From Paragordius varius (taxonomy: Eukaryota; Animalia; Nematomorpha), in the NCBI GenBank assembly GCA_964247055.1, contig OZ176053.1:9548001-9612000 (forward strand): a stretch of DNA of 64,000 nt, in the 5' to 3' direction. Numbering within the stretch: the first letter of the stretch is position 1; every line of letters begins with the position of its first letter. The notes beneath the pieces are model-generated. The model ran no database searches and was not told the DNA's origin. It worked only from the letters and a program-made list of their open reading frames with translations. A program made the translations under genes and the position numbers. Positions 24,101 through 63,000 of the stretch are shown piece after piece.

Positions 24101-27100
24101 ATGCATTTTGACTTCTTAAAATATCTACTCAAATATTTTTATGTTAACCATGCTTTTTATTGCTCAATAATTATTCCAATTTTATTTCTACCTATACCGA
24201 TATTATATCCTGATCCAGTATATTTTTATATTCTTAATATAGGCAATTAAATGCGCCTACGGTTCTCTGGTTACAGCATTATTTCTAATTACACAAGCAT
24301 TACCTATACCTATCGCATCTCTTATACCAATATTTATTTTTCCATGTTTAGGCATTATGAATTTAAAGGATGTTTCCGCTAATTATATGAAAGTAACTAA
24401 ATATTAATATCAAGGATCCAATCACCTTATTTCTTGCCTCTCTTATCATTGCACAGGCTATTGAAAATGTAGATTTACATAGGCGAATATCGTTAAATTT
24501 GTTACTTCTTTTTGGGTCTACTTCAATATGGTTTTTATATATTTACATAATTTATTAATACTTTTATATGTTTTATTAATATATATTGATTTTCTTGAAC
24601 AACCTTACTCATTTCTTTTAAAATTGTTATGTTTTATAAATAGAAACAAGAGGATGATGCGAGATAAAAATTCAATATTTTTCTATAACTCATAAAATCA
24701 TGTCGCAATTTTAAATAATATTAATTATTTTTATTTTTGACATACAACTAAAAATACTTTTTCTTGCATAAAAATCAAAATTATTTTTCATTGTCAATAT
24801 AATTATATTTAGCACTTAATTATTTATTTTTTTGTAAAATCACTACTAAAAATAATAATTTTAAAAAATTATTACATTTTATAAAAAGAAACGTTTCGAA
24901 TTTAATAAAAATAACGCAAACTCAAGAAAAAATAGTTTATGAATCGGTCCATAGAGCATCATAGAAAAATATATGTCTTTAAATTACACCCATTGGTTCT
25001 TAAAGTCAGTAACACAACAAATCAATAATATAATTTTATGAGTCAAAAATGAATTAATTTAACTGCACATTTTATAAATAAATCACCATATTACATGTTT
25101 TAAATAACAATATTTAATAATTATATTATAAAATTTTTAATCATTTTTACCCAACATCTGAATTGACAATTATTATAAACAAAGTTAATTTGCCACACAT
25201 TTGGATAGGTTAATGTTAGGAATTCTATCGACCACCTTTTTTATCTCCATGTGGATTAATAACACGGCAGTGGCTGCTCTTATAACACCCATAGTGGCAG
25301 GAATTATGAAAGAGTTTCAAAGATTAAAACATGCCCACACTAACGGAGATTTTGGCACGAATTTGGGTGGTTTTTTTTATCTATTAAAATGTTTGAGTGT
25401 TAAATGGATTGTACTGTTGTATTAAGGAATTATTTTATGATTAATAATTTTGGAGTTATACGTCTATAATGTATTTAAGCCATAGGATATGTTTAAGTTT
25501 ATTCTGGGAGGTCGATTTAAGAACAAAGTTTTTTGACCGCTAACTTTCATTTCTTCACTTAAGTTTTTATAATTTATTGTAGTATAAATTTTGAAACATT
25601 TTCCTATTTAAAAGCTAATATAACTAATCGTTTTCAGATATAGTGTTGATACATTTTTTTATATGTGTCATAAAGAAAATGGGAAGGATCTGAGGTACAG
25701 TAACACGGAAACTAATTTGCAATATTTACTTTCTCCTACGAAAAATATGCCAGCAAAGCGCCTTTCGGTCTATTAATTTTTATCACATTACCTGAATACA
25801 TAAAAAACAGATTATAATAAAATATTTTATTCTTACAAATATTTATGTAACATATCAATAAACCGTCATGTAATAAACATATTTTACAGGCGAATCAATT
25901 TAAATTATCCCTTATAGATTGGTGAAAATATCATAGGCGTTGATTACATGCCAAATTTAATAGATAACGCAGGTCTTAATGCTGAAGAATTTTCTAATAT
26001 ATCAAATAATAAAGGTATTTTACAATTTTATTTATAATGAAGATTAATTAAATTTTATTATTTAGTTTACTTTAATTTTGTTTATTTAGCAACAAACTTA
26101 CAGAAAAACCGGTAATATATATGTATACTTAAATACTTTTTAATAGTTGTGTTAACTATCTGATGTCAAAAAATTGACAATAAAAAACTACATTATTATT
26201 TTAAATGGTAAAATTAAAAGATTTTATAATATAAGGTTTTGGAAAAGAGCAATATACTAAAAGATTTTTTTTAGATTTTTTCTTATTTTATAGCATTAAA
26301 TTAGGAAAACAATTATTAAATACTTTGTGCCAAAACTTGGCATTTGGTAAGTCCATTTTATTTCTATGTGACCATCTTTATTTTAATAATGTTTACGTAT
26401 CAATCATGGTGGACAGTAATTTAAACATAATATATAATAATAAAAGCAATACTTTTCTAAATTAATTTTAAGTTTTTGCAATTTGCTCAGTTTTTTAACA
26501 TTAAATTTATATTTTAGATCAAATATACCTCATAGCCTTTCATCACTCCATAAAGCTTTATTCATAAGCGTGGCCTATGGGGCTAATTTGGGGGGAACTG
26601 GCTCTCTTACAGGGACAGGTCCTAACCTTATAATGACTGGGATAATGACACAGTTAAATTCAACTATGATACAACAAATTTTATACTTTACAAAAATTTT
26701 AAGACTGATTTTTTATGAATACAGTTTAATCAATAACTTTTATATTTTTAGAAAGAAACAAATATTTGTCTATATATATATATATATATTATATTGAGCT
26801 TTTAGAATTTTTTTTATTAAATTTGTTATAAATAGACTTTTTGGTCCCTCAGCCGAAATTAGTTTTGCAAAATGGTTGATATATTCCTGCCCAGGAGCCA
26901 TAATAATTCTCATACTAACGTGGATAGCATTGGCTTTTATCTTTTTGGGATTTGGGTAGTTTTCAATTTTTTGATCTAATGATTGATAATTTAGCCAAAT
27001 CTCTAGATATTATTGCAACATTATTTTATTAGTTTAAGTAATTAATGAATGTGTAATTTTAATACTAAAATTAAATTAAATATATATATAGAGAATCATT

Positions 27101-46500: not shown

Positions 46501-49138
46501 TAAAAGCGGAGGATTTTATAAATCCTATTCCCATACATAAGAAATATCAATTTGGGATTTAAATAGGATATAGGAATATTTGCCTCCCCCAATCCGGCCC
46601 CATCAAAATTTTGAGGAAGTGTATGCCACCATACAGCAAATTACAATACTTCTTTCATCTTACCAACTATTCCACTTTTCCTAGTTTTTTGATTTTTGCG
46701 CCCTATAGCTTATCCAATCTGTTTTGAATGCTTTCGAATTGGAAACCCACCGCGTCCGAAAATTCCCATCAATGAAAGCGAAAGAATGTGCGGTTTCATA
46801 AATATATGTTCCCTTTCAACATGGTATTATTCTATGCCGCAGCTTCTTTAAGGCAGTTGCTCTTGAATTTATTGCATTAAGATCACCTAATTTTAACGAT
46901 TGCTTATCCAGGTTAGATGATTGCTTTCATTCCTTACTGCACATCCCCTATGGGGTTCGATTTCAGTGTCAACAACGTTTGATCACAGATATATTTTATG
47001 CTACTTCTTAATTCTAACAATATGAACACGTTAGCCTATTGTTTTTGACTATCATTTTTACTGTTTAAGCCTTGGGAATTACACCTCTAGCGCCTCTCGG
47101 ATCATTTTTCCATATTAATATCGAAAGTTTGCAGAGTTATAAATATTGAGTTTACCTTGTGAAGTCAAAAGTTTACCAGTTTTTTGAGTAAAAAACACAT
47201 TTTTTTAAGGCAATCAATTATTTATTTTATTAAAAATATTATCCATCAGCTTCTACACATTTCAACCACCTCTCAGCTACTATATGAATGAATGCCATGC
47301 CAGAAAATCTGTTTGTCTTTTGCGGCAGAGCATTCATCAGGCAATTTTAACGTCTTCGATATTATTGAAGGGCTGCTCTACGAGCGTGTGCCCCCATTGA
47401 TGAGAAAAAGAAATATTATTGCTTGTAGATGTTTACTGATTGTTATTTGTGATAAGATAGCTTCTGTCATCCAATAAGTCTTGCGCTTTATAGTCTTTGC
47501 AATTGTGTGATCTATCATAATACTCATTCTCTTTCACATTCAAATCACAACATTTAATTGTCGAAACCATGTTTCACGTTTTTGAATCGATGGACCATGT
47601 TCACCATATGTTTCTATTAGCCCAAGAGTGACTCTTAGCAGCTTTTTTTAAAATAAGAAATACAACGCGGTCACAAATGTTTGAGGCAAAATCCGACATG
47701 AGTGAAAGATAAAATAAGCCGCTAGATTTCGGAGGCAGGTGTGCGTTTATTGTTTAATGTCTGATAAGTAAAATGGCGTCTATACTAAATTAATCGGCTG
47801 CGTATTTTCCAATAACGCTTCTCTTAATCAAACTGATGATATGACACATAATATAATGCTTCAGCTCTTTTTATTTATGCAACCTCTTGGGCCTTGAAGA
47901 GGTTTACTTGAGTGACAAATATTTTAGTTGCTTCTATTTGTGTTGGCCATTCGCACTCATCAGACGATTTGGGTTAAAAATTTCGAATATTTTTGTTACC
48001 ATATGGGAATAAGCGAAAGGTGTTTATTAACTTAAATTTAAGATTAAGACCTTTAAGGCATTAGATATATTTTATAAAAACTTTCGCCTAGGTAGAGATA
48101 TTGCATCTATTAAATTGGTCGGTATTTAATATTTCCAAATAATCTTTGCTTGTTTCATATAATTTATTAGTTATAGAAACGTAATTTGCTTCAGACTTCA
48201 TATATTAATGTAAAAAAATATACTCATCCGCATAATATGATATAAAAAAATTAGAATAGGGTATTTTTAATTATATGATAATTCTTTAAGAGAAATCGAT
48301 CCTTTTTAAATATTTGAAAAATACATTTAAATATGCAGACGGCATCAGGAATGGCATTTTGTCTCTACCATTTAGCTCGCAATCCTAATATTCAAAATAA
48401 ATTGCGCCAAAAAATTGAAAAATCAGTTGGCGAAAAGGGGCATATTGATGGTAATATCATAAGAGATCTCACCTATTTAAGAGCAATCATTTGGGAATCA
48501 TCCAGGTATTGTTAAATGATCTTTGCATATTATAAGCGATAAAAACTTTTTTATATATTAATTTTTAATCATGAAGGTTAACTCCTGTTGCATTTGGAAC
48601 AGTTCGCATGTTGAGCCAACCCATCGAACTTTCGGGCTATCAAATACCTGCTGGAGTTATTATTCCTTTGTTAACTTTATATCTATTATTACTTGTTTTT
48701 ATTTATCTATCTTTTCATGATAAATATTTTTTTAAAAAAAGGTACCCTTATTGATACAAAACATGGTTATGTCACGGCTACCAAATTACTTTAAGAATCA
48801 TGACGAATTTATTCCAGAACGTTGGCTAAAGCATGGATCACAAAAGGAATTCCATCCATATTGCGTTTTACCGTATGGTCATGGTCCACGTATGTGCATA
48901 GGACGTCGTTTCGCTGAACAAGAATTGAATTTGGGTTTAATAAAAGTAATAACATATCATAATAAATTTGCCACATCTTGAATTAATACATATAAATAAA
49001 AATGATAAAATTAATATATATATTACATAGATTATACGAAATTTTAATATTGAATACCACGGAGATCCTATTGATAGTTACACCGAATTGATAGTAAAAC
49101 CAGATAAACCATTGAACATCACATTCAAAGATATTTGA
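41168..49138 (+). CDS. Mitochondrial-clan cytochrome P450 (CYP44/CYP49/CYP302-like), ~613 aa. Exons 41168-41612, 44596-44827, 45284-45477, 45544-45745, 45812-46022, 48339-48505, 48577-48655, 48742-48945, 49031-49138
   Basis: Motifs IPGP, KYGPIVRE, GTEWRELR (WxxxR), KWSLES, SGIQTTA (I helix), WESSR (ExxR), FIPERW and the heme motif PYGHGPRMCIG. All nine exons are phase-consistent with GT-AG ends (1842 nt total). The subfamily call is from memory only. Confidence 0.95.
41761..42022. mobile_element. Tc1/mariner-type MITE with TA target duplication, in CYP intron 1
   Basis: TA|CAGTGGACCC ... GGGTCCACTG|TA. Confidence 0.8.
43306..43623. mobile_element. hAT/Buster-type MITE containing a (TA)n tract (43529-43569)
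   Basis: Termini CAGAGGTGTCCA ... TGGAACACACCTG, flanked by GTTTAAAG and GTATGAAG. Confidence 0.7.
47150..47830 (-). mobile_element. Internally deleted mariner relic in CYP intron 5
   Basis: Minus-strand fragments LIETYGEHGPS...ETWFRQ (N-terminal HTH region) and FNNIEDVKIA...IFWHGIH...RWLKCVEADG*YF (mariner C-terminus). Confidence 0.75.
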
Positions 49139-51845: not shown

Positions 51846-53737
51846 TTGATTATATTGTTGGAAACAGGCGTCTTAAAAATAAAAGCACAAAGAGGGTTAG
51901 AAAAATATTTCGGAATTATGTTTAAATCCCTCACAATGCTCGTTTTCCAAAGGAGTATTGATAAAATTTCGAAATATTATATTCGTAATCTTCTATTTTA
52001 AAACTCAATACTATCCGACTTAAGGGACTTTTAACGACTAAGCTCTTAAATAAAAACCTTTTTCCATTTTAAATTTAAGAGCAAACAGCAATTATAGTTT
52101 TATTGGTAAGAGAAAAGCTGATTTCGTTTAGTATAGATAGGTTTACGGATATCTCAAATTTATTTTTAAGGTAGTGGCTGTCTTTTGTCACGCATCCCGG
52201 AGAGTCATTTGACATATATTTTTTTATTAATAACAAAAGGATTATGAATTTTAAAACATAAAAATTTTAACCATGATGCGTGTTCCCTTTTACCGAATAA
52301 TTGCTTCAGAGTAAACATTTTACGTTTGATAAATACATTCATTTATTCAATTTCCATTCACGAATTTTAAAATTGTTATATATGGATTATCGGAATTTAT
52401 ATAGAAAATATTTGATTGTCATTCGAATAAAATAAATATTATGGCTTTCCAACACTCAATTTGTCGAACTTGACCAATCTAAAATAAAAAATAGTATTAA
52501 ATGTATTTGAATTTGGATCACGGGTGTATATGATTATATTTAATTAATAATATTGCATTAAAAGGGGTTAAAAACCCTTATTGTGCGCCAAATTTTGGGA
52601 CCAAAAACAAACATAGTTATAAATGTAAAATAATAATACCACTAAGTCTATAGGGGAAAAAACCAAAAGTCCTCGTTATTTAAATTATGCGCATTTTACA
52701 AAAAACAGCTAAAGGGGGAAAATTCCGAAAAATTATGCGCATAAACAAATTATTATAAAATTTTTGTGTTATCATCTCCTATAATTTTTACAAAATCAGA
52801 ATTTATTACGTCTAATTTCACCCATTTATGATTTTAATTTCGTTTTATTTTTTGCAAATCGTTTTAAAGAACCTAGCCCAAACTAAACCACCCAAAAAGA
52901 AGGTGTACCACGAAGTTCTAAAGCTTGTTAAATTAACTACAATTAAATCTCTTAAATATCAATGTTATGTATCTTTATAAAATGAAGAAGATAAGTAATT
53001 TTGAATTAAAGATGTCTCTGTAAATAAAATGTCTTAATATTCGAATTCAATTAGGGTTTGTATTCAATTTATTAGAGTTCTTTATTTTTATTTGAACAAT
53101 ATAGATCAGTCCCAGAATTTTAAGGATTTTGTAAAAAAAAGCAGAAATTTAAATTTTTGGAGAAAAAGAGAACGATGGGAAACTATGCCAAAAGCTCTAA
53201 AAAGACTTTGTTACCAGCTCTTTATGTTAAATTTGGGTGCTATGAATTATAAAATGGTGAACTATTTAATAATTACAAATAACTCATTAAAATATCAAAT
53301 TTGCACACAGGCATCAGATTTCGTTAAAAAATAGATAAAAATAAAGTATAACAAAATAAAATTTGTTATGATATCTAATAGTAAAGAGAAAAAGTATCAA
53401 AAAAACGGTAAAGGGTAAAATAATCAAGAGTTAATTTAAAAAGCTACCATTTCAATGTTTTATGTATCCTTCTAATATTAATAAAACTTAAAATATTTGA
53501 TCCAAACTTACTTAAAGTTAATTATTTGATTAAACTCATCGTAAAATGAAGTAACCCTATTTTATTAAAAAGATGGTATGTTGTTTTATAAAATCCAAAT
53601 CGGATCAAAAAATGTCACCGGCTAATTTGTCAACTAAATGATATTAAGATAATAATGAATCTTAACTAATTCGAAACTGGTGGAAAACTAAAATGCTATC
53701 TATAAATATTCTATCGATTATTATAAAAAAATATCGA

Positions 53738-54464
53738 TCATAATAATAAAGCTAATAAATACGGAGCAAGTTGATCGGAAAACGTTTTGATCGTCTCCAT
53801 CAATATTTTCTAGGATATTAATCAATAACAAAACTTGTCCTGGAGGAGCGATCATACTAAACTCTATGAGATAATTATTGGATATGGGTTCCAGATTTTC
53901 AAAATTATTTGGTCTTATCATCTTTATTAGCATATATATTATTGAATACTTTATATATTTTTGATATTACAATTTTTAATTTTCCTTTATTGAACAGATA
54001 ACCTTTGCATATGTATTCATATTCTTGTCTTTTCTATATATAAATAATTAATAACCTAAAACCCAAATCGAAATAAAATGAAAGAGCGTTGGGACTAGCA
54101 GGAACATCTATGGATGTTCGATAATATACGATAGAATTTTTATCAGCAAATTCAATAGGACCTTGATAACGAATATAATGAGGAGCATTTGTAAATGACA
54201 AAGATCTACGAATTTTAATCTTAAAAGTATTTGAGAGCCCAGAACCGTGAGTTTCGTTTTCAATGAAGCATTAAATAAAAACATACTAGAAATTAAAATT
54301 AATCCCGTTTCATAGTCTACAAACTCATTTACCGCAGAAGTTTTTCCATCACAAATACCCATGAGTTTTTGTATGACCATATCTAAATCCTTTTCCAAAA
54401 TGAGTCCCTGTGTAAAATATTCTTGCGGCTGTGCAAGATTTGGATCAAAAATATCTGTCAGCAT
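53738..54464 (-). CDS. MED18: Mediator subunit 18. Exons 54464-54287, 54260-54056, 54028-53950, 53921-53835, 53809-~53738 (last codons uncertain)
   Basis: Spliced translation: QEYFTQGLILEKDLDMVIQKLMGICD...FVDYE...KIRRS...HYIRYQG...DKN...RTSIDV...DLGFRQEYEYICKGYLFNKGKLKIVISKIYK...EPISNNYLIEFSMIAPPGQ...KTFSDQLAP. This is colinear with MED18 as I remember it (EYLLQG...LRGLCD; GFR..EF..KG..F.KG; YLVELSVVAP.GQ; FAEQLKP). The model needs four 25-28 nt introns. Confidence 0.88.
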
Positions 54465-54501
54465 GGTTATTGGTGCATTCAATTTAACTGGTGTTTTACA
54501 T

Positions 54502-55880
54502 ATGGATAGCAAGGAAATTTTTTTGAAAGGAGCATCGTCGAGAGACCCTCTGAACTTGGAAAATTCTTTACCAAAACACAAAAATTATAATAAAGATCCC
54601 TTAATAATACCATCAATCGTTAATGTTAAGAATCCTTTGAATTTAATTTTAAATTATGAGGTTAAAAATAATACGAAACCCCCACCTCGTAAAAAAAGAA
54701 AATCAGATTTTTTATACACAAATAATTTTTTTTATGGAAGAAAAACTGAAAAAACCAAAACTGTATTTACATACGGGAATTACCCTGGCTATTATAATTA
54801 TCGGAATCCAAATACAGCCAATTATGGACCTGATGAAATGATTGATCCTCGGCTCTATGTAATACACAAGGATTGGATTATGAATAAAAAAATATTAGAT
54901 GTTGGATGTAATGACGGCTCAATCACCATCTTTATTGCCAAAAAATTTAAACCATCTTTGATTGTTGGCCTAGACATAGACAATAAATTAATAAAAAAGG
55001 CTAAATATGAAATATTACGGCAACTTGAATTGGATAAATCTCACATCAAACATCCAGTTCGCAAAAATTTATCCAAAGCTCATCTATATCCCTTGTTTAA
55101 TACCGTGACCCAAGATAAATTTCCTTACAATGTTGAATTTGATACGGTAATTCTCATTGAAATTTATGTTAGCTTTGGTAAATATTTTTTAGTAAATGAT
55201 TTTTTTATCAATAGATTAATTATGTGCCAGAGTGTCCCGAGTTATTGGCCTTACAGCATAGTGAATATGATGTAATCTTCCTCCTCTCAGTTTCAAAATG
55301 GGTTCATTTTAATTGGGGCGATACCGGTTTAAAACTTACATTCCAGCGAATCTACAAACAATTGAATCCCAAGGGATTATTTGTGTTTGAGCCACAAGAA
55401 TGGGGAAGCTATCTTAAAGGGAAGAAAAAGGTTATGATCCATGAAAAATAATGAAAAAAATATATTTAGTATATAAATAGTTTCATTTATTACCCATATA
55501 TTTTATAGAATTCGATTAATTATTTACTTATTTTTAGATTTTAATATTATATTTGTAGACTGGTCACCTTCTATCCCACATCAAATTTAAACCAGAACAA
55601 TTCAAATCATACCTTTTACACGAGGTTGGATTCAATTATGTTAAAGCTTTTCTCCCATCCAAGCCTCATGGAAGTATTATTGACAATTATACTCTTTTTA
55701 TATTAGATAGTCTTTTAATCATTGTTAAACTTTATATTTACCATTTAACTTTTAGCTGGGTTTTCTCGCACAATTTATGTTTATGTCAAATGTGATAAAT
55801 CAGAAGTCGAAAAGTATGTCTGTGAAAACAAACTTGAGGGTGGAGAATATGCAATATCCAAACCGACCGAAATAAGATAA
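54502..55880 (+). CDS. MEPCE: 7SK snRNA methylphosphate capping enzyme (bin3/BCDIN3 family), ~366 aa. Exons 54502-55146, 55215-55430, 55559-55673, 55756-55880
   Basis: Motifs [13 protein letters not shown] (N-terminal DPLNL), [65 protein letters not shown] and GFSRTIYVY. Phase-consistent GT-AG introns. The start could be further upstream (54361). Confidence 0.93.
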
Positions 55881-55973
55881 TTTTAGAGAATGATTAGATA
55901 ATCATAATAATATTTAAGCATATATTAAATAAATTTAATTTTAAAACATAGCTGTGTTGTTAGCGTGGGTAAC

Positions 55974-56275
55974 TTATTGAGGAATTTTGATGTTTTCTTG
56001 TTTTTTCCTGTATATTGATTCTTCTGTGGTAAATTTTATGGCTCTTTTTAATGAGATTGCAATATATATGGTAACAGCTAATGAAAAAGGTTGTAAAGTT
56101 ACGAGAGCTATATATAATACTAATTTAAAAAAGTTTTTTTCATTTATTTGGCTAAAATCTATTACGCAGTGCACGAAATCGGGAAAAACATCCCGATACA
56201 ATTTTGTATTATGATCATTAAATGCATCAGGATTCTCGGCATACGAGTTATAAGAAGTCACATCTATTATGGTAT
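55974..56275 (-). CDS. Putative terminal exon of an unidentified gene with one predicted TM segment, convergent on MEPCE
   Basis: 95-aa open frame with coding-like composition and a hydrophobic run (FFKLVLYIALVTLQPFSLAVTIYIAISL) followed by KR. I do not recognise a family. Confidence 0.35.
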
Positions 56276-56357
56276 ATGTTCTCCATTAAAAAATAGCCGT
56301 TATGTTTAGTGAATAGATGCTTCATTAAGAAAAGTTTCATTATTTTTTATCATAAAA

Positions 56358-56693
56358 TATACCATTTACAATTCAAATTCACCATTATACAATTCAAATT
56401 CACCCTTAAACAATTCATATTCACCCTCGAACAATTCAAATTTACCCTCAAAACATTATATGTTTCTTGAGATTAAAAACCTATATTTTTATATATTTAA
56501 CAAATAAAATTTTGTTTCAAGTTAAAATAATACTGAAAAAATAATATATGACATAAAAATATATTTTGTATCAATAATGAGTTATAGTTCGAAAACACAA
56601 TTTATTTTTAGGGTGAATTTGGATTGTTCAATTTGAAATGTTCGAGTGAAAATTTAAATTGTTCAAGGGTGAATTTGAACTGTAAATGGTATA
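56358..56693. mobile_element. Small TIR element with 21-bp subterminal tandem repeats
   Basis: TATACCATTTACAATTCAAATTCACC ... GGTGAATTTGAACTGTAAATGGTATA. Both arms carry 4-5 ACAATTCAAATTCACCCT-like units. Confidence 0.8.
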
Positions 56694-57099
56694 GATAAAA
56701 GAAAAAAAATATTTTACATAAGAATAATTTGACTCATAAATTTGTTAAATTAAAAAATATCCAAAATTTTCTATACATGGTGTATCTTTTTCTATAAATG
56801 AACCATAATAAAATATATTAATATAAAAATGATAAAATATAATAAGGAAATAAGATGTGTCAATGTCCATGTGGTTTTCTTTTTTAAGTGGATCGCTCAA
56901 TACCTCAAAGTAATCAGATATTGTCAAAAATTGTTTGAATATGTTATTAATTGGTTAATGAGATTCTAATTCAAATGTGAGCTCTGAAAGTAACATTTTG
57001 GATTCTTTTTGATTTGAAATGTGTTTGATCAATTTTTTTGTAAGAAATGGTAGGTATACTAGACAGGAATAACAGCGATCCAGATATAGTTTGGTCTCA

Positions 57100-60050
57100 G
57101 GTGACTAAAACAGGGAGGGGGGTTTCTGTAAAAGGAAAGGCGGAATAAATTGGAAATCGCGAGACAAAAAAAGCTTTTAAAATGTGGAGATTTACCCACC
57201 AAACAAAAGACAATGAAAAATAAAGGGATTAATAAGTAATTTAAAAAGCTTGTGAGAAAGCTTAAAAAAGGAAACGGAATGACCTCATGAGGAGCTAGAT
57301 AGTAAGCAAAGTCTTGTTAAGGTTTTCAAAATCGGTCGACAAAGACATAAAAGAAAGCCAGCCTTGTCCCCTTATGCGACCGATATTAATGACAAAAACG
57401 GTAAATAAGTCATAGATGAAGGGTCTAAGAGGTGGAAGAAATTTTTCGAGGACCTTGAATTGGGCTTCAAAACGAATTTACTCGAAATATCAGATTCTAT
57501 CTGCGCAAATTTAATGTAATATTAAAGAAAAAATCCAGGTTGGTTCAGAAGAGATATCTGTAAATAAAGTTGCAGGTTCTGACGATATTAATAAAACTGT
57601 TGGAAAATAATGTTAGCGAATGATATTGAATATTAATAATATAGTTATTACAGGTATGATATTCGAATGGAAGGACTTTCACTGTTTTCATTTTTGAGGG
57701 TAAAGGAGGCATCGATGATTTAATAACAAACGGATAAAAGGGATGTCTCATACAAAGAAATTATTTGAGAAAGCACTATAAAACCGAAAAATGATAAGTA
57801 TATAATAAATTTGATTTCATGTAAAGTCCATCATCGATCCGATTTACGCAGTTAAAAGGTAAATTGAAAAGCAGGAGTTGCGTCAAATTTTAATCTTAAA
57901 AGGATTCAAAATATACCATGAAGTACAACATGGTAAAGCTTAAGACAAAAGCAGGACTCTCCCATCATACCAAAGTTAAAACACATCAATGTCAGATCCT
58001 ATTGAAACACTGTGACTCAAAAATGGGGATCACAAAATAAAGCCTAATGAATCTTATATCATCCGATAGCTAAAGGGTATTGATTATCGAAATGATACAC
58101 GCGGTTAAAATACAAGAAAAAAAGTTATTTTAATTTATCTGCTGTAGACAAAATTAAAAAATCGTATTTTTACCTATTAGGTCTAATAAAATTAACTACA
58201 ATAGATAAAAACGTAGAATAATTTTAAACGAAGAGAGGGTCCCAGAAGGATTAACATGAATATAACCTAAAAATTGCCCTTTTACGTCAAATTTGAATCA
58301 TAAAAACTTGTTAAGATGCGGTAAAATATTTTATTTTTTATAAAAACAATCACATATCTTTATATAAAAAGTTTACTAAATATATCGCCTTCAAAAAAAA
58401 TTCCGACCTTATATAAAAATAAAATTATTTTTGGATAATTTACACCAAAGTGGAAGCTGCGTATAATTTTAACAAAACAATTAATATATATGATAAATAC
58501 TTTTTCCATATTCGATGCAGAAAAATAATCTATCATCTCAGATTTTTATTTAGGGAATTTTTCACCCTAAAATCTTGATTATATATTTGGCGCCACAGGT
58601 TTTAGGGTAAAATAATTCTTTAAATAATCTGAGATGATAAATCTTTTTTCCTGCATCGAATAATATGGAAAATATAATTATAAAATTTATTAAATATTAT
58701 GTTAAAATTATACGCAGCTTCCGCTTTGGTACATATTATCGGAAAATTTTCTTTTTTATATAAGGCTTGAATTTTTTTAAAGGCAATATAATTACTAAAC
58801 TCTATATATAGAGTTAATATATGATTCTTTTAATAAAAATTAAATATTTTACTGCATATTAACAAATTTTTATGATTCAAATTTGACGTCAAAGGGCGAT
58901 TTTTTAGCTTATATACTAGTAGATCTTTGTGGGACCCTCCGAAAAAGTGAATAATCTTTTTTGATATTTTACGTATAGAATTATCCTTGTGCTATTTTTG
59001 AAATGAAATTTTGTTGACGCATTTTCATCTATTGTAACTAATTTTTTTGATTAATATGCGATATGCGATTTTTTGATTTTGGCTAACAAAAAAGTTAATA
59101 AATTTATTTTCTAGTATTTCAACCGCATATATCATTTCGATATTCATTATCCTGAATAACTATCGAATGATATATGATTCATTCAGCTTTATTTTTTGCT
59201 GCGCACCCTGAAATAAGCCAATGTATAGGGGTCAGCAATCATTCTATTGATTCTTCATATGCATGGACGTAATATCAAAAGAAGGAAAATATTGTGGTGG
59301 CTGGTATTTGCTTTATTCAGATGACCTAATAGTTTTGTCATATTCAGACTTCCATAAATTGAAAGAATTAGTGAGCATATGGATTGTTCTATTACAATGG
59401 TGCCGTTTAAAAGATATACAAGAAAACGCATATAAATTTTGTTGGGAAATAGCAAGAAATATTAGAAGAAGATTGGGTAAAAGGTCAGGAGGAGTGAAAA
59501 ATTTAGGCGATTTTAGCAGAATATGGTTTAGCATATAATTTCAAAATTCGAAATAGTTTGGCAAATTATAAAGAGATCTCAAATGTTTTATGTAGTAAAA
59601 ATATTGATTTAAAAGTTTAAAGTAAGGTTTAGAGTGCTGATGTAGAGCCAACAACGTATAACTCACAGCTATGGGCACTAAAGAAATCAGAAGAAAAGCA
59701 CTTTGATTTTTGAATCGAAAATGCTTAAATTGATGTGTGATGTAACTGGTAAAGAGAAAAGAGAAAAGAATCGACAAAGAATACAAACCGACAGCACAAA
59801 AGATGATGTTAAATCGTCTTAGATGGTTTGGACATATGAGGGGAAGAGATGGTAACTATATCGGTAATATTGATGAATATATTGTGGAAGGTAAGAGGGG
59901 AAGTAGGCACACTAAAATACGATATATAGATACGGTTAGAGATATGGCAAAAACTGAACCTAAAACGCGTCGACGCCATAAACAAGGTTCTATGGCGAAA
60001 TATTTTACGAGTATGATAAAACTGCTCGAAAGAGTCATATAATTTAATGT
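57100..60050 (+). mobile_element. Decayed RTE-like non-LTR retrotransposon, split by a foldback insertion
   Basis: Relics include KVAGSDDI, IFEGKGG...GMSHTKKLFEK (~57570-57780), GVSN...CMDVI...LLYSDDLIVL (59220-59340, YADD-like) and RLRWFGHM...VEGKRG (59803-60042). Confidence 0.75.
58030..59200. mobile_element. ~1.2-kb foldback (near-palindromic) element
   Basis: Arms are mirrored about a ~30-nt spacer near 58570-58600, for example ACGTCAAATTTGAATCATAAAAA vs TTTTTATGATTCAAATTTGACGT and GGAAGCTGCGTATAATTTTAAC vs GTTAAAATTATACGCAGCTTCC. Confidence 0.8.
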
Positions 60051-63000
60051 AATATATTAAATACACAACTTATGTAAAACTTAAATTTTTAGACAAACGA
60101 ATCTTTTTTTCGACAATCAGAGGTGATCTCACCATAATTGAATTATATAAAAACAGCAATTTATAGCGAACATGTTTCAAAAATCTTCGAGAACTCCCTT
60201 CACCAAAGTTTTGGTAAATAAATTAAATTTTTAAAATATCCTTTCGGATAAATTTTTCATTTTTAAATTTAGCTTATACAAAATTTTAATCTCGCAACAC
60301 CGGCATTTTTACGTTTAGTTATGGATAACTTTCCAATTTTAGAGGAGTGCATTTCAGGCTTATGAGGCCCTCAATTAAATTTAAATATAAAATATTGTGT
60401 AGTCTATGAATATTTTAGTGATATTTTTTAAAATGGAGCATTTAGGTAGCACTTAAATAAATATTATTTATCAAAATATATGCAATTTTTGCCATTTTCC
60501 TATGTGGGAAAGTTACCATGAAACTAGAAGTAATAACCTTCTTATATCAGCTGAACAAAAGCATCATAAGAATTCGGACACATTTATCTCCCAGAATATC
60601 TATACACAGTATACGAAATCGGGGGTCATGGAAAAATATCTCTATATTTTGATAGAAAAATGATCAGGACTATCATGGTACTTTTGGTTTTGGCCCTTAG
60701 AAGTGATATAAAAAAGTTACACTTTTATGCTTAGTGGTCCATATCACAAAATGGCAAACATTGATCTTGTAAAAAATGTTTTTGATTAAAGCTTAATGCT
60801 CCAAAAATATTACTATAATACATCATAAACTAGTTATAAAAAACAAAAATATTTTAATTTAGATGGGGGCTTTAAAAGTATACTTTTTTATTTTTCTAAA
60901 ACGGGTAAAATAAAAGCAAAAATCCTTTGCAATAAAATGTTTAAATATTTGCTAAATTTAACATCAAGAAAAAATATTTAAAATATGCATACTTTTAGAA
61001 ATATTCAATTTTAGCAAAATTTCGTTGAATTAATTCCTCTTATTTTTTACGATGAAAACAGTATATAAACACTTTTATATGTAAAAACACTTTTTCTATA
61101 TAATTAGATGATTCTGAACATTCCTATCGCTTCAGAATTTAATTCCAAGACTCGGTTACTTTTTAAATTTCGGTGAATTTTTATAACCCTAATTTATATT
61201 ATCATAAATTTGAAGACAACGAATATTTTTAACCAAATCCTGAGGTAGAAAGAAATGTTCAGCATCATCATATATTGAGTGCTATTATAATATCTATAAG
61301 CGTTTTCATCATGCCTAAAAAGGAAAAGTATGCTTAACAATTTTGCTAAAAATTCAATTTTTGTAAAATATGTACTTTTTTAAAAAAATAATATTTTGAT
61401 GTCAAAATTTAGCATAATTTAAAAATTTTATTGTAACCCCGCATTTTTGCTTTTATTCAGCAGAGCTAAAAAAATTGGTACTTTCGCGCCCACATCATTA
61501 AAATATTATAAAAATATTGTGTTGCTATAAGTAGTATGTTATATTTTAGGAATTTCATGCTTTCATAAGAAATTTTTAATAAAAAAATGTGTGATTTCCT
61601 TTTTATGATCGGAGCCCTTACCATATTAAATAGCTTTTTTATATCACTCCTAAGCCCCACCAAAAGCACCAAGAGATTCCCGATTTTTTATCTATCGATA
61701 TATATAGTGCGAATAAAACTAACCAATTGGCACTTAGCTTTTCACTGTTTGGTCCAAGTGGACTAATTTGGGTAGTTTAAAAGAGCTAAATTTGAAATGA
61801 ACTAGGGTGTAAACTTATTTTAGCTAAAATTAGATTTCCAAACATTGTCATGAGATTTGTGATTTCTAGAGTATAAAAATGGGACAGCGCTAAAACACGA
61901 TTGAAACGCAGCTGACATACAACAAAATATACATCAGGTTGCTGGTAAAATGTAGCCTGAAAGCTTTTAAAATTTCCAAACATAATATGCAAATTTACCT
62001 GATGCATCATTCGAATTGTATCTAAATATCGCAGACTATACGCAAGTTGATATTTTTAAAAAACTACAGAAAGAAACAGTCCCAATTTAAATTTATGCTA
62101 TCCTTATAAAAATTATACAGAGCTAAAATATCTAAATAAAATTTAGTTTTGAAACAACCATATCAAACTACTCCGACGCCATTTTTTACAACATTTTTAC
62201 AAAATGTCAGGTTTATTTATGGTTAATTCTTAAATTAAGGCTAATTTTTAGAATAAATCTCATATAATATTAATAGCAGGTTTATTTTTAATATTTTTTA
62301 ATTTTGGTTATGCACAAATGTCCTGACTAAAGTTTTAGCTTTGGGCCTTTCTATAAAACAAGTAATATCTTAAATATTTTTATATTTTAGTTCATTAATG
62401 TTATATAAGTGCAAACCCATACCATGGTTTCGATTCCTTCCATACTTTTGAAGTATTCATTTTAAACAGGCCTGGGATAACCAAATACCACAATTTGCAT
62501 CGAAGGACTGAAACGAATGCGTTACCAAGTGTTATATACAACAAAGTTATAATTGTCTTAAAAATAATATAAATACCGGATAAAAAATAATTAACAAAAT
62601 TTTTTTATTTTTTAGAATAATGGTTTTTAACACTTATACAATTCGATTCAAGGGGGGATTTTAATTACCAGATTATATTTGGTTGGTATTTTTAATAAAA
62701 TAAACGGTCTCAATATAAATTTATTCTTCTATCCTACTATAAATTATAAAATTAAGTTAAAACATCTAAATAAAATATAGTTATTATAAAAAGTTTCGCA
62801 TCGAAATACTTCGGCACTTTTTCACATCATTTTTGAAAATATCGTATTTTATTTTAAAGCTAAAATAAATTTTTTTGGAACACATCTAACATTGATATAA
62901 GAAATACTGTTTATTTTATATTATTTTTAAGATTATAATGCAATGTTATGTTGACTAATTTTTTACCTTTGGTTTTCGCGTTAAAATTAGTAATATCAAG

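Follow-up and report, generated by a model that had tools for sequence, protein, structure and literature searches.

Candidate introns of 25–28 nt, one of them with a putative TG end, in the MED18 gene of the nematomorph Paragordius varius

We analysed a 64,000-nt stretch of the Paragordius varius genome (Nematomorpha; contig OZ176053.1 of assembly GCA_964247055.1, forward-strand positions 9,548,001 to 9,612,000), hereafter the window, and find on its minus strand a gene for the Mediator subunit MED18. The gene is likely to be intact and functional, with five inherited spliceosomal introns, four of which would now measure only 25–28 nt and the first of which would end in TG; we infer the splicing, the branch motif and the use of TG from the DNA. 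Taken by themselves, the four 25–28-nt segments are very likely to be real micro-introns of a conserved animal gene, as judged by comparison with a related nematomorph.

The identity of the gene follows from its second and third exons. The exon 2 open reading frame (frame 2, minus strand) matches human MED18 residues 66–125 in the solved Mediator structures 7emf_R and 8t1i_M (E = 1e-7), and residues 50–109 in the shorter chain 6w1s_M. When the same frame was used to search 1.84 billion representative proteins, the sole close match was P0005, a 214-aa protein with 55% identity over residues 61–129 (E = 2e-16). P0005 is annotated in Gordionus sp. m RMFG-2023 as a Mediator subunit, and it contains the PF09637 domain. 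Exon 3 (26 aa) aligns with positions 150–174 of the Pfam Med18 profile PF09637 at E = 4e-4 and 20.9 bits, just below the 21-bit cut-off, and exon 1 as a protein query gave no match. The complete model consists of six exons and five introns and encodes 214 aa (Table 1). It is collinear end to end with the Gordionus protein, which has the same length, at approximately 54% global identity (59.8% in the BLASTP local alignment), and the global alignment contains two gaps, the first near residue 58 and the second close to the C-terminus. The alignment of the spliced protein to an orthologue proposed in an earlier note on this DNA thus comes out in favour of the model over its whole length.

The same note had described four minus-strand segments of 26, 27, 28 and 25 nt, and we reproduce their coordinates, sequences and lengths in full. 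Its claim that removing these four recovers MED18 stands in part: the flanks do encode MED18, but a fifth intron of 52 nt has to be removed as well. The fifth intron of the Gordionus gene, which follows QLKP, pointed us to it. With intron 5 kept in, the model ends in the unrelated tail ...APYLLALLL; its removal joins ...QLAP to IFIDSILVFHQFRIS and the stop codon, and the protein then ends in ...QLAPIFIDSILVFHQFRIS. Other acceptors for intron 5 were tried as well, and among the 17 downstream AGs a MED18-like C-terminus is obtained only from the AG at 53711.

Table 1. Exons and introns of the MED18 model in window coordinates, with the Gordionus introns at the corresponding aligned codons
Feature	Position	Strand	Length	Description	Gordionus intron (length; shared phase; site)
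Exon 1	54287..54464	-	178 nt	ATG 54464-54462; ends in phase 1; aligns with the Gordionus N-terminus (QPQEYF.QG..., EF.DYE.GLIL)	
Intron 1	54261..54286	-	26 nt	GTATGT...TTAAT...TTG; putative non-canonical GT..TG	40 nt; phase 1; inside K of KN
Exon 2	54056..54260	-	205 nt	matches human MED18 and P0005	
Intron 2	54029..54055	-	27 nt	GT..AG; in-frame TAG inside; 11% GC	49 nt; phase 2; GF[R/Q] to QEYEY
Exon 3	53950..54028	-	79 nt	PF09637; QEYEYI.KGY.F.KGKLKI common to Gordionus	
Intron 3	53922..53949	-	28 nt	GT..AG	49 nt; phase 0; after SKI[YK/FN]
Exon 4	53835..53921	-	87 nt	Gordionus alignment PNN.E.L.P.S..Y.I.FS.IAPP.Q	
Intron 4	53810..53834	-	25 nt	GT..AG; TTAAT 8 nt upstream of the 3' end	186 nt; phase 0; after PP[G/S]Q, before K
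Exon 5	53763..53809	-	47 nt	K.L.E.IK.F.DQL.P common to Gordionus	
Intron 5	53711..53762	-	52 nt	GT..AG; placed by the MED18-like C-terminus and the Gordionus intron position	46 nt; phase 2; QL[A/K]P
Exon 6	53662..53710	-		stop TAA 53664-53662; completes the 214 aa	

Retention of any of the four short segments breaks the reading frame, as the earlier note had said: introns 1, 3 and 4 shift it, and intron 2 brings in its TAG. Taken alone, this argument is weak, since the DNA is so AT-rich that chance easily supplies short frame-restoring GT..AG segments. In two homology-free scans of the window, frame-restoring GT..AG pairs of 20–32 nt were no commoner than control dinucleotide pairs, and GT..TG pairs joining open frames, which were also taken into the homology-free scanning, reached counts no higher than the controls. 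Frame restoration by itself does not exceed chance; the coincidence of all five sites with introns of the Gordionus gene does, on the alignment described below.

A second gene calls for the same caution. MED18 (start 54464) lies head to head with a plus-strand gene for a MEPCE/Bin3 methyltransferase (start 54502), identified by its matches to human MEPCE structures, and the likely start codons are 37 nt apart. Its first intron has two possible versions, one of 68 nt (55147–55214, with the donor after NVEFDT) and one of 23 nt (55192–55214). Each has GT..AG ends and puts MEPCE back in frame; the human alignment, in which NYVPE corresponds to NYVLD of chain 5una_A (residue 162), fixes the acceptor alone. 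That two introns can be drawn at one site warns against calling micro-introns from the reading frame alone. A protein search with the MEPCE reading frame returned distant homologues only, none from a closer relative. The 37-nt spacing means that the 5' ends overlap, that a very small promoter serves both directions, or that trans-splicing is at work; a CAG stands 26 nt upstream of the MED18 ATG.

The strongest evidence that the five segments are true introns comes from Gordionus. Its genome has a GC content of 26.9% and was annotated by BRAKER using RNA-seq (10.1101/2023.06.26.546503); the window, at 23–33% GC, is similar. The P0005 gene lies on chromosome record OX940783.2 of assembly GCA_954871325.2, which we examined as L001:5001–6015, and MEPCE is not adjacent to MED18 at this locus. 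Only one model results when P0005 is fitted to its own locus; it has five introns, all GT-AG, of 40, 49, 49, 186 and 46 nt. In the global alignment with this one orthologue, every one of the five window introns falls at the identical aligned codon and in the identical phase as a Gordionus intron (Table 1), and it is this agreement in codon and phase that leads us to read the segments as introns. The two genes are thus members of the same family with equal protein length and the same intron sites; what differs is the introns themselves, which in Gordionus are 40–186 nt long and GT-AG throughout, while the first four of the window gene are 25–28 nt and the first would be GT..TG. Base composition also separates the segments from the coding sequence, with 11–24% GC in the MED18 introns and 31% in the exons.

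A second individual provides independent information. Run X3 derives from another sample with the same species label, and we compared it with the window over 53300–56300. We treat it as DNA, since exons, introns and intergenic DNA are covered evenly and without joints. X3 contains two haplotypes and differs from the window at 113 sites and by 8 indels over 3 kb, and diversity in this species is very high. The details that follow come from 40 listed differences of the 113. Among them, the only MED18 indels are a 1-nt deletion at 54052, in intron 2, and a 2-nt deletion at 53930, in intron 3; both are found in one haplotype, in which introns 2 and 3 would each measure 26 nt. Indels that shift the frame are tolerable only where a sequence is non-coding, and the X3 deletions therefore support introns 2 and 3. 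The exon 1 substitutions among the listed differences (54288, 54360 and 54411) all lie at third codon positions; two are synonymous and one changes M to I.

X3 also bears on whether the apparent introns, and intron 1 in particular, are assembly or sequencing indels in a gene that really has fewer micro-introns or none. A 301-nt X3 contig covering 54059–54359 crosses intron 1 with zero gaps and a single substitution (54288), in spite of the homopolymer runs (T5, A4) within or beside the intron and the frequency of indels in long-read assemblies of AT-rich genomes. Intron 1, its TG included, is thus no assembly error, and the assembly indel that the earlier note had named as a way to refute its reading is not found there. 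Introns 2 to 4 contain stops or would require indels of 25–28 nt, and every site matches a Gordionus intron. We regard the indel explanation as extremely improbable.

The same observations speak to the state of the gene. The reading frame is open in each of the six exons, the model is collinear with Gordionus across an equal 214 aa, the listed exon 1 SNPs sit at third positions and the listed indels of the gene all lie within introns. MED18 is a core subunit of the Mediator head, and no second copy was seen in the window. It is accordingly quite improbable, in our judgement, that this copy is a decaying pseudogene or is mis-spliced, so that TG would no longer work as an acceptor and some or all of the segments would stay in, leaving no functional mRNA. 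Such a reading would draw on the non-AG acceptor of intron 1, which has no AG for 41 nt downstream, and on the transcript searches: three RNA runs of the same species label (X8, X9 and X10) yielded no contig on 53300–56300 at a likeness of at least 88%, and show neither excision nor retention.

For the four segments together, the core of the reading in the earlier note, that they are introns, is upheld by the Gordionus positions, by X3 indels in two of them and by their AT-rich composition. Intron 1, which the note had listed without comment, differs from the others in its ends. Its donor is GTATGT and it ends in TTG, and no AG is present between the frame-2 stop (an intronic TAA) and the conserved part of exon 2. 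The GT..TG model yields KNETHGSGLSNTF, to be compared with KNTPLSSKISSSF in Gordionus, and the part in which the competing models diverge then contains 5 identities. As regards the exact ends, we think GT..TG the probable reading of intron 1, with appreciable room for doubt. Moving the cut by +1 or -1 nt replaces the conserved K by R or E and loses the GT, and GT..AG options of 47, 67 and 81 nt for this intron run into stops or the wrong frame.

One canonical alternative deserves closer attention. Intron 1 could be a 26-nt GT..AG intron at 54245–54220, exon 1 continuing through 54286–54246 as ...SSMFLFNASLKTKLT, in which case the GT..TG segment would be coding. This intron would fall in the same length class and restore the same downstream frame; frame 0 is open throughout the region, and only about 2% of the identity to Gordionus would be lost. 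The orthologue nevertheless places its intron 14 codons away, at the very codon and phase given by the GT..TG model, and the alternative product, with SMFLFNASLKTKLT in place of KNETHGSGLSNTF, shares no identities with Gordionus KNTPLSSKISSSF in the differing segment, against the five of the GT..TG model. The alternative intron would further have 38% GC (counted by eye) as opposed to 11–24% in the other introns, and the GTATGT donor and TTAAT of 54286–54261 would become a coincidence. On balance we consider this alternative unlikely.

The change from frame 0 to frame 2 at intron 1 also equals a -1 shift, and approximately 160 nt are open in both frames, as a programmed -1 ribosomal frameshift in place of splicing at that point would have it. 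The overlap contains no slippery heptamer of the X XXY YYZ type, Gordionus has a plain intron at that very codon, and the frameshift product would carry extra residues that are missing from the orthologue. The chance that frameshifting accounts for the frame change is, in our estimate, negligible.

Returning to the GT..TG reading of intron 1, TG 3' splice sites have been verified experimentally in humans, as alternative sites of U2-type introns (PMC2374985). The human cases are similar to the window intron in that they are GT..TG introns of the major spliceosome in which the terminal G is kept. They differ in that the human TG sites are alternative (PMC2374985), whereas the 26-nt window intron would rely constitutively on TG as its single acceptor. 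We entertain, as a serious possibility that we would stop short of calling probable, that the smallest introns here need no AG, the cut being fixed a short distance past the TTAAT-like branch site, so that TG would be used constitutively and MED18 intron 1 would belong to a recurrent GT..TG class. What anchors this reading is the orthologous GT-AG intron of Gordionus together with the identical intron 1 DNA in the second individual.

The candidate splicing signals are sparse. From intron 1 to intron 5, the MED18 donors read GTATGT, GTTATT, GTATTC, GTTTTG and GTATTT. Two further micro-introns are found near the start of an SLC13-like transporter gene on the plus strand (24218–24242, 25 nt, and 24393–24414, 22 nt), both GT..AG and both with TTAAT. 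This motif occurs in five of the six micro-introns that we examined in the window, namely MED18 introns 1, 2 and 4 and the SLC13 pair; with a background of 11.5% in random 26-mers, the binomial probability of five in six is approximately 1e-4 by our own arithmetic. MED18 intron 3 has CTAAT and TCAAT in place of TTAAT. Putative yUnAy-like branch motifs lie 5 to 19 nt from the 3' end, and we take the TTAAT-like motif to be the presumptive branch site. In intron 2, a nearer TAG at +22 has to be skipped for the AAG at +27, which points to a branch point lying very close to +22 or else to a degree of wasteful splicing. In Gordionus MED18, introns 1 to 3 (L001:5176–5597) contain CTAAT, TTAAT and TTAAC 7–8 nt before the AG, without a polypyrimidine tract. 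A very short distance between branch site and 3' splice site may be general in nematomorphs. MED18 intron 5 and the MEPCE introns are longer than the micro-introns, so at most a bimodal length distribution is to be expected.

We propose the following explanation. The five MED18 introns would have been inherited from the common ancestor with Gordionus, and in the lineage of the window the first four would have shrunk to 25–28 nt, the last now being 52 nt. Removal would probably proceed by ordinary U2-type, intron-defined splicing that makes do with very few signals. These would be a 5' end of the form GT(A/T)T, a body rich in A and T, in most cases a branch-like TTAAT or CTAAT, and, shortly downstream of that motif, the 3' end. 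Intron 1 would have kept a strong GTATGT donor and TTAAT and would be excised exactly at TG, so that the G alone would survive of the usual AG.

Three further features of the window may be recorded. Downstream of MEPCE, at 56343–56708, four tandem 21-nt units are accompanied by a pair of 79-nt inverted repeats 208 nt apart, with a MITE-like look. At 59263–60066, open reading frames overlap on both strands, and one peptide, RLRWFGH..., is typical of the reverse transcriptase tail of non-LTR retrotransposons. Exon pieces of a cytochrome P450 with the haem-binding PYGHGPRMCIGRRFAE motif lie at 48333–48981 on the plus strand.

Schistosoma and tapeworm genome papers reportedly describe small 5' and large 3' introns, with a short class that is said to peak above 30 nt and with non-AG ends as no feature. 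The likeness to MED18 is that short introns come early and longer ones later (in MED18 26, 27, 28 and 25 nt, then 52 nt).

Introns below 30 nt were long believed to be missing in animals. A survey of 51 animal genomes published in September 2026 reports introns of less than 30 bp in two groups alone, the myxobolid myxozoans and Dicyema japonicum (PMC13644364). The lineages given in the earlier note for introns of this size are outdated by the publication of the myxobolids (PMC13644364). These two groups resemble the window gene in several ways: their nuclear genes have introns of 22–28 nt, to be set beside 25–28 nt in window MED18, their splice-site motifs are reduced, a polypyrimidine tract is lacking, and A residues are conserved a little way before the 3' end (PMC13644364). 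All three are parasitic lineages. There are also differences: Dicyema and the myxobolids have genomes that are compact throughout, with a median intron of 22–27 nt (PMC13644364), whereas in the window a 52-nt intron occurs in the same gene as the MED18 micro-introns, and the window lineage is unlike them in being ecdysozoan and in having one intron that would end in TG.

Nematomorpha are absent from the main text of the 51-genome survey (PMC13644364), our literature search found no paper on intron length in this phylum, and introns go unmentioned in the Gordionus genome paper (10.1101/2023.06.26.546503) and in a nematomorph comparative-genomics preprint. As far as the literature searched shows, micro-introns in Nematomorpha are unpublished. 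The putative GT..TG intron is the most novel part of the present findings. A constitutive micro-intron of this type would inform how the spliceosome chooses a 3' site where neither a polypyrimidine tract nor AG recognition of the U2AF type would fit. In practice, genes such as MED18 would be broken by gene finders and spliced aligners that require introns of at least 30–40 nt and accept only GT-AG. The BUSCO completeness of Gordionus is only 71.6% (10.1101/2023.06.26.546503), and broken gene models could inflate the conserved-gene loss reported in Nematomorpha. If our reading of MED18 is true, the nematomorph would be a third, independent animal lineage with introns shorter than 30 nt.
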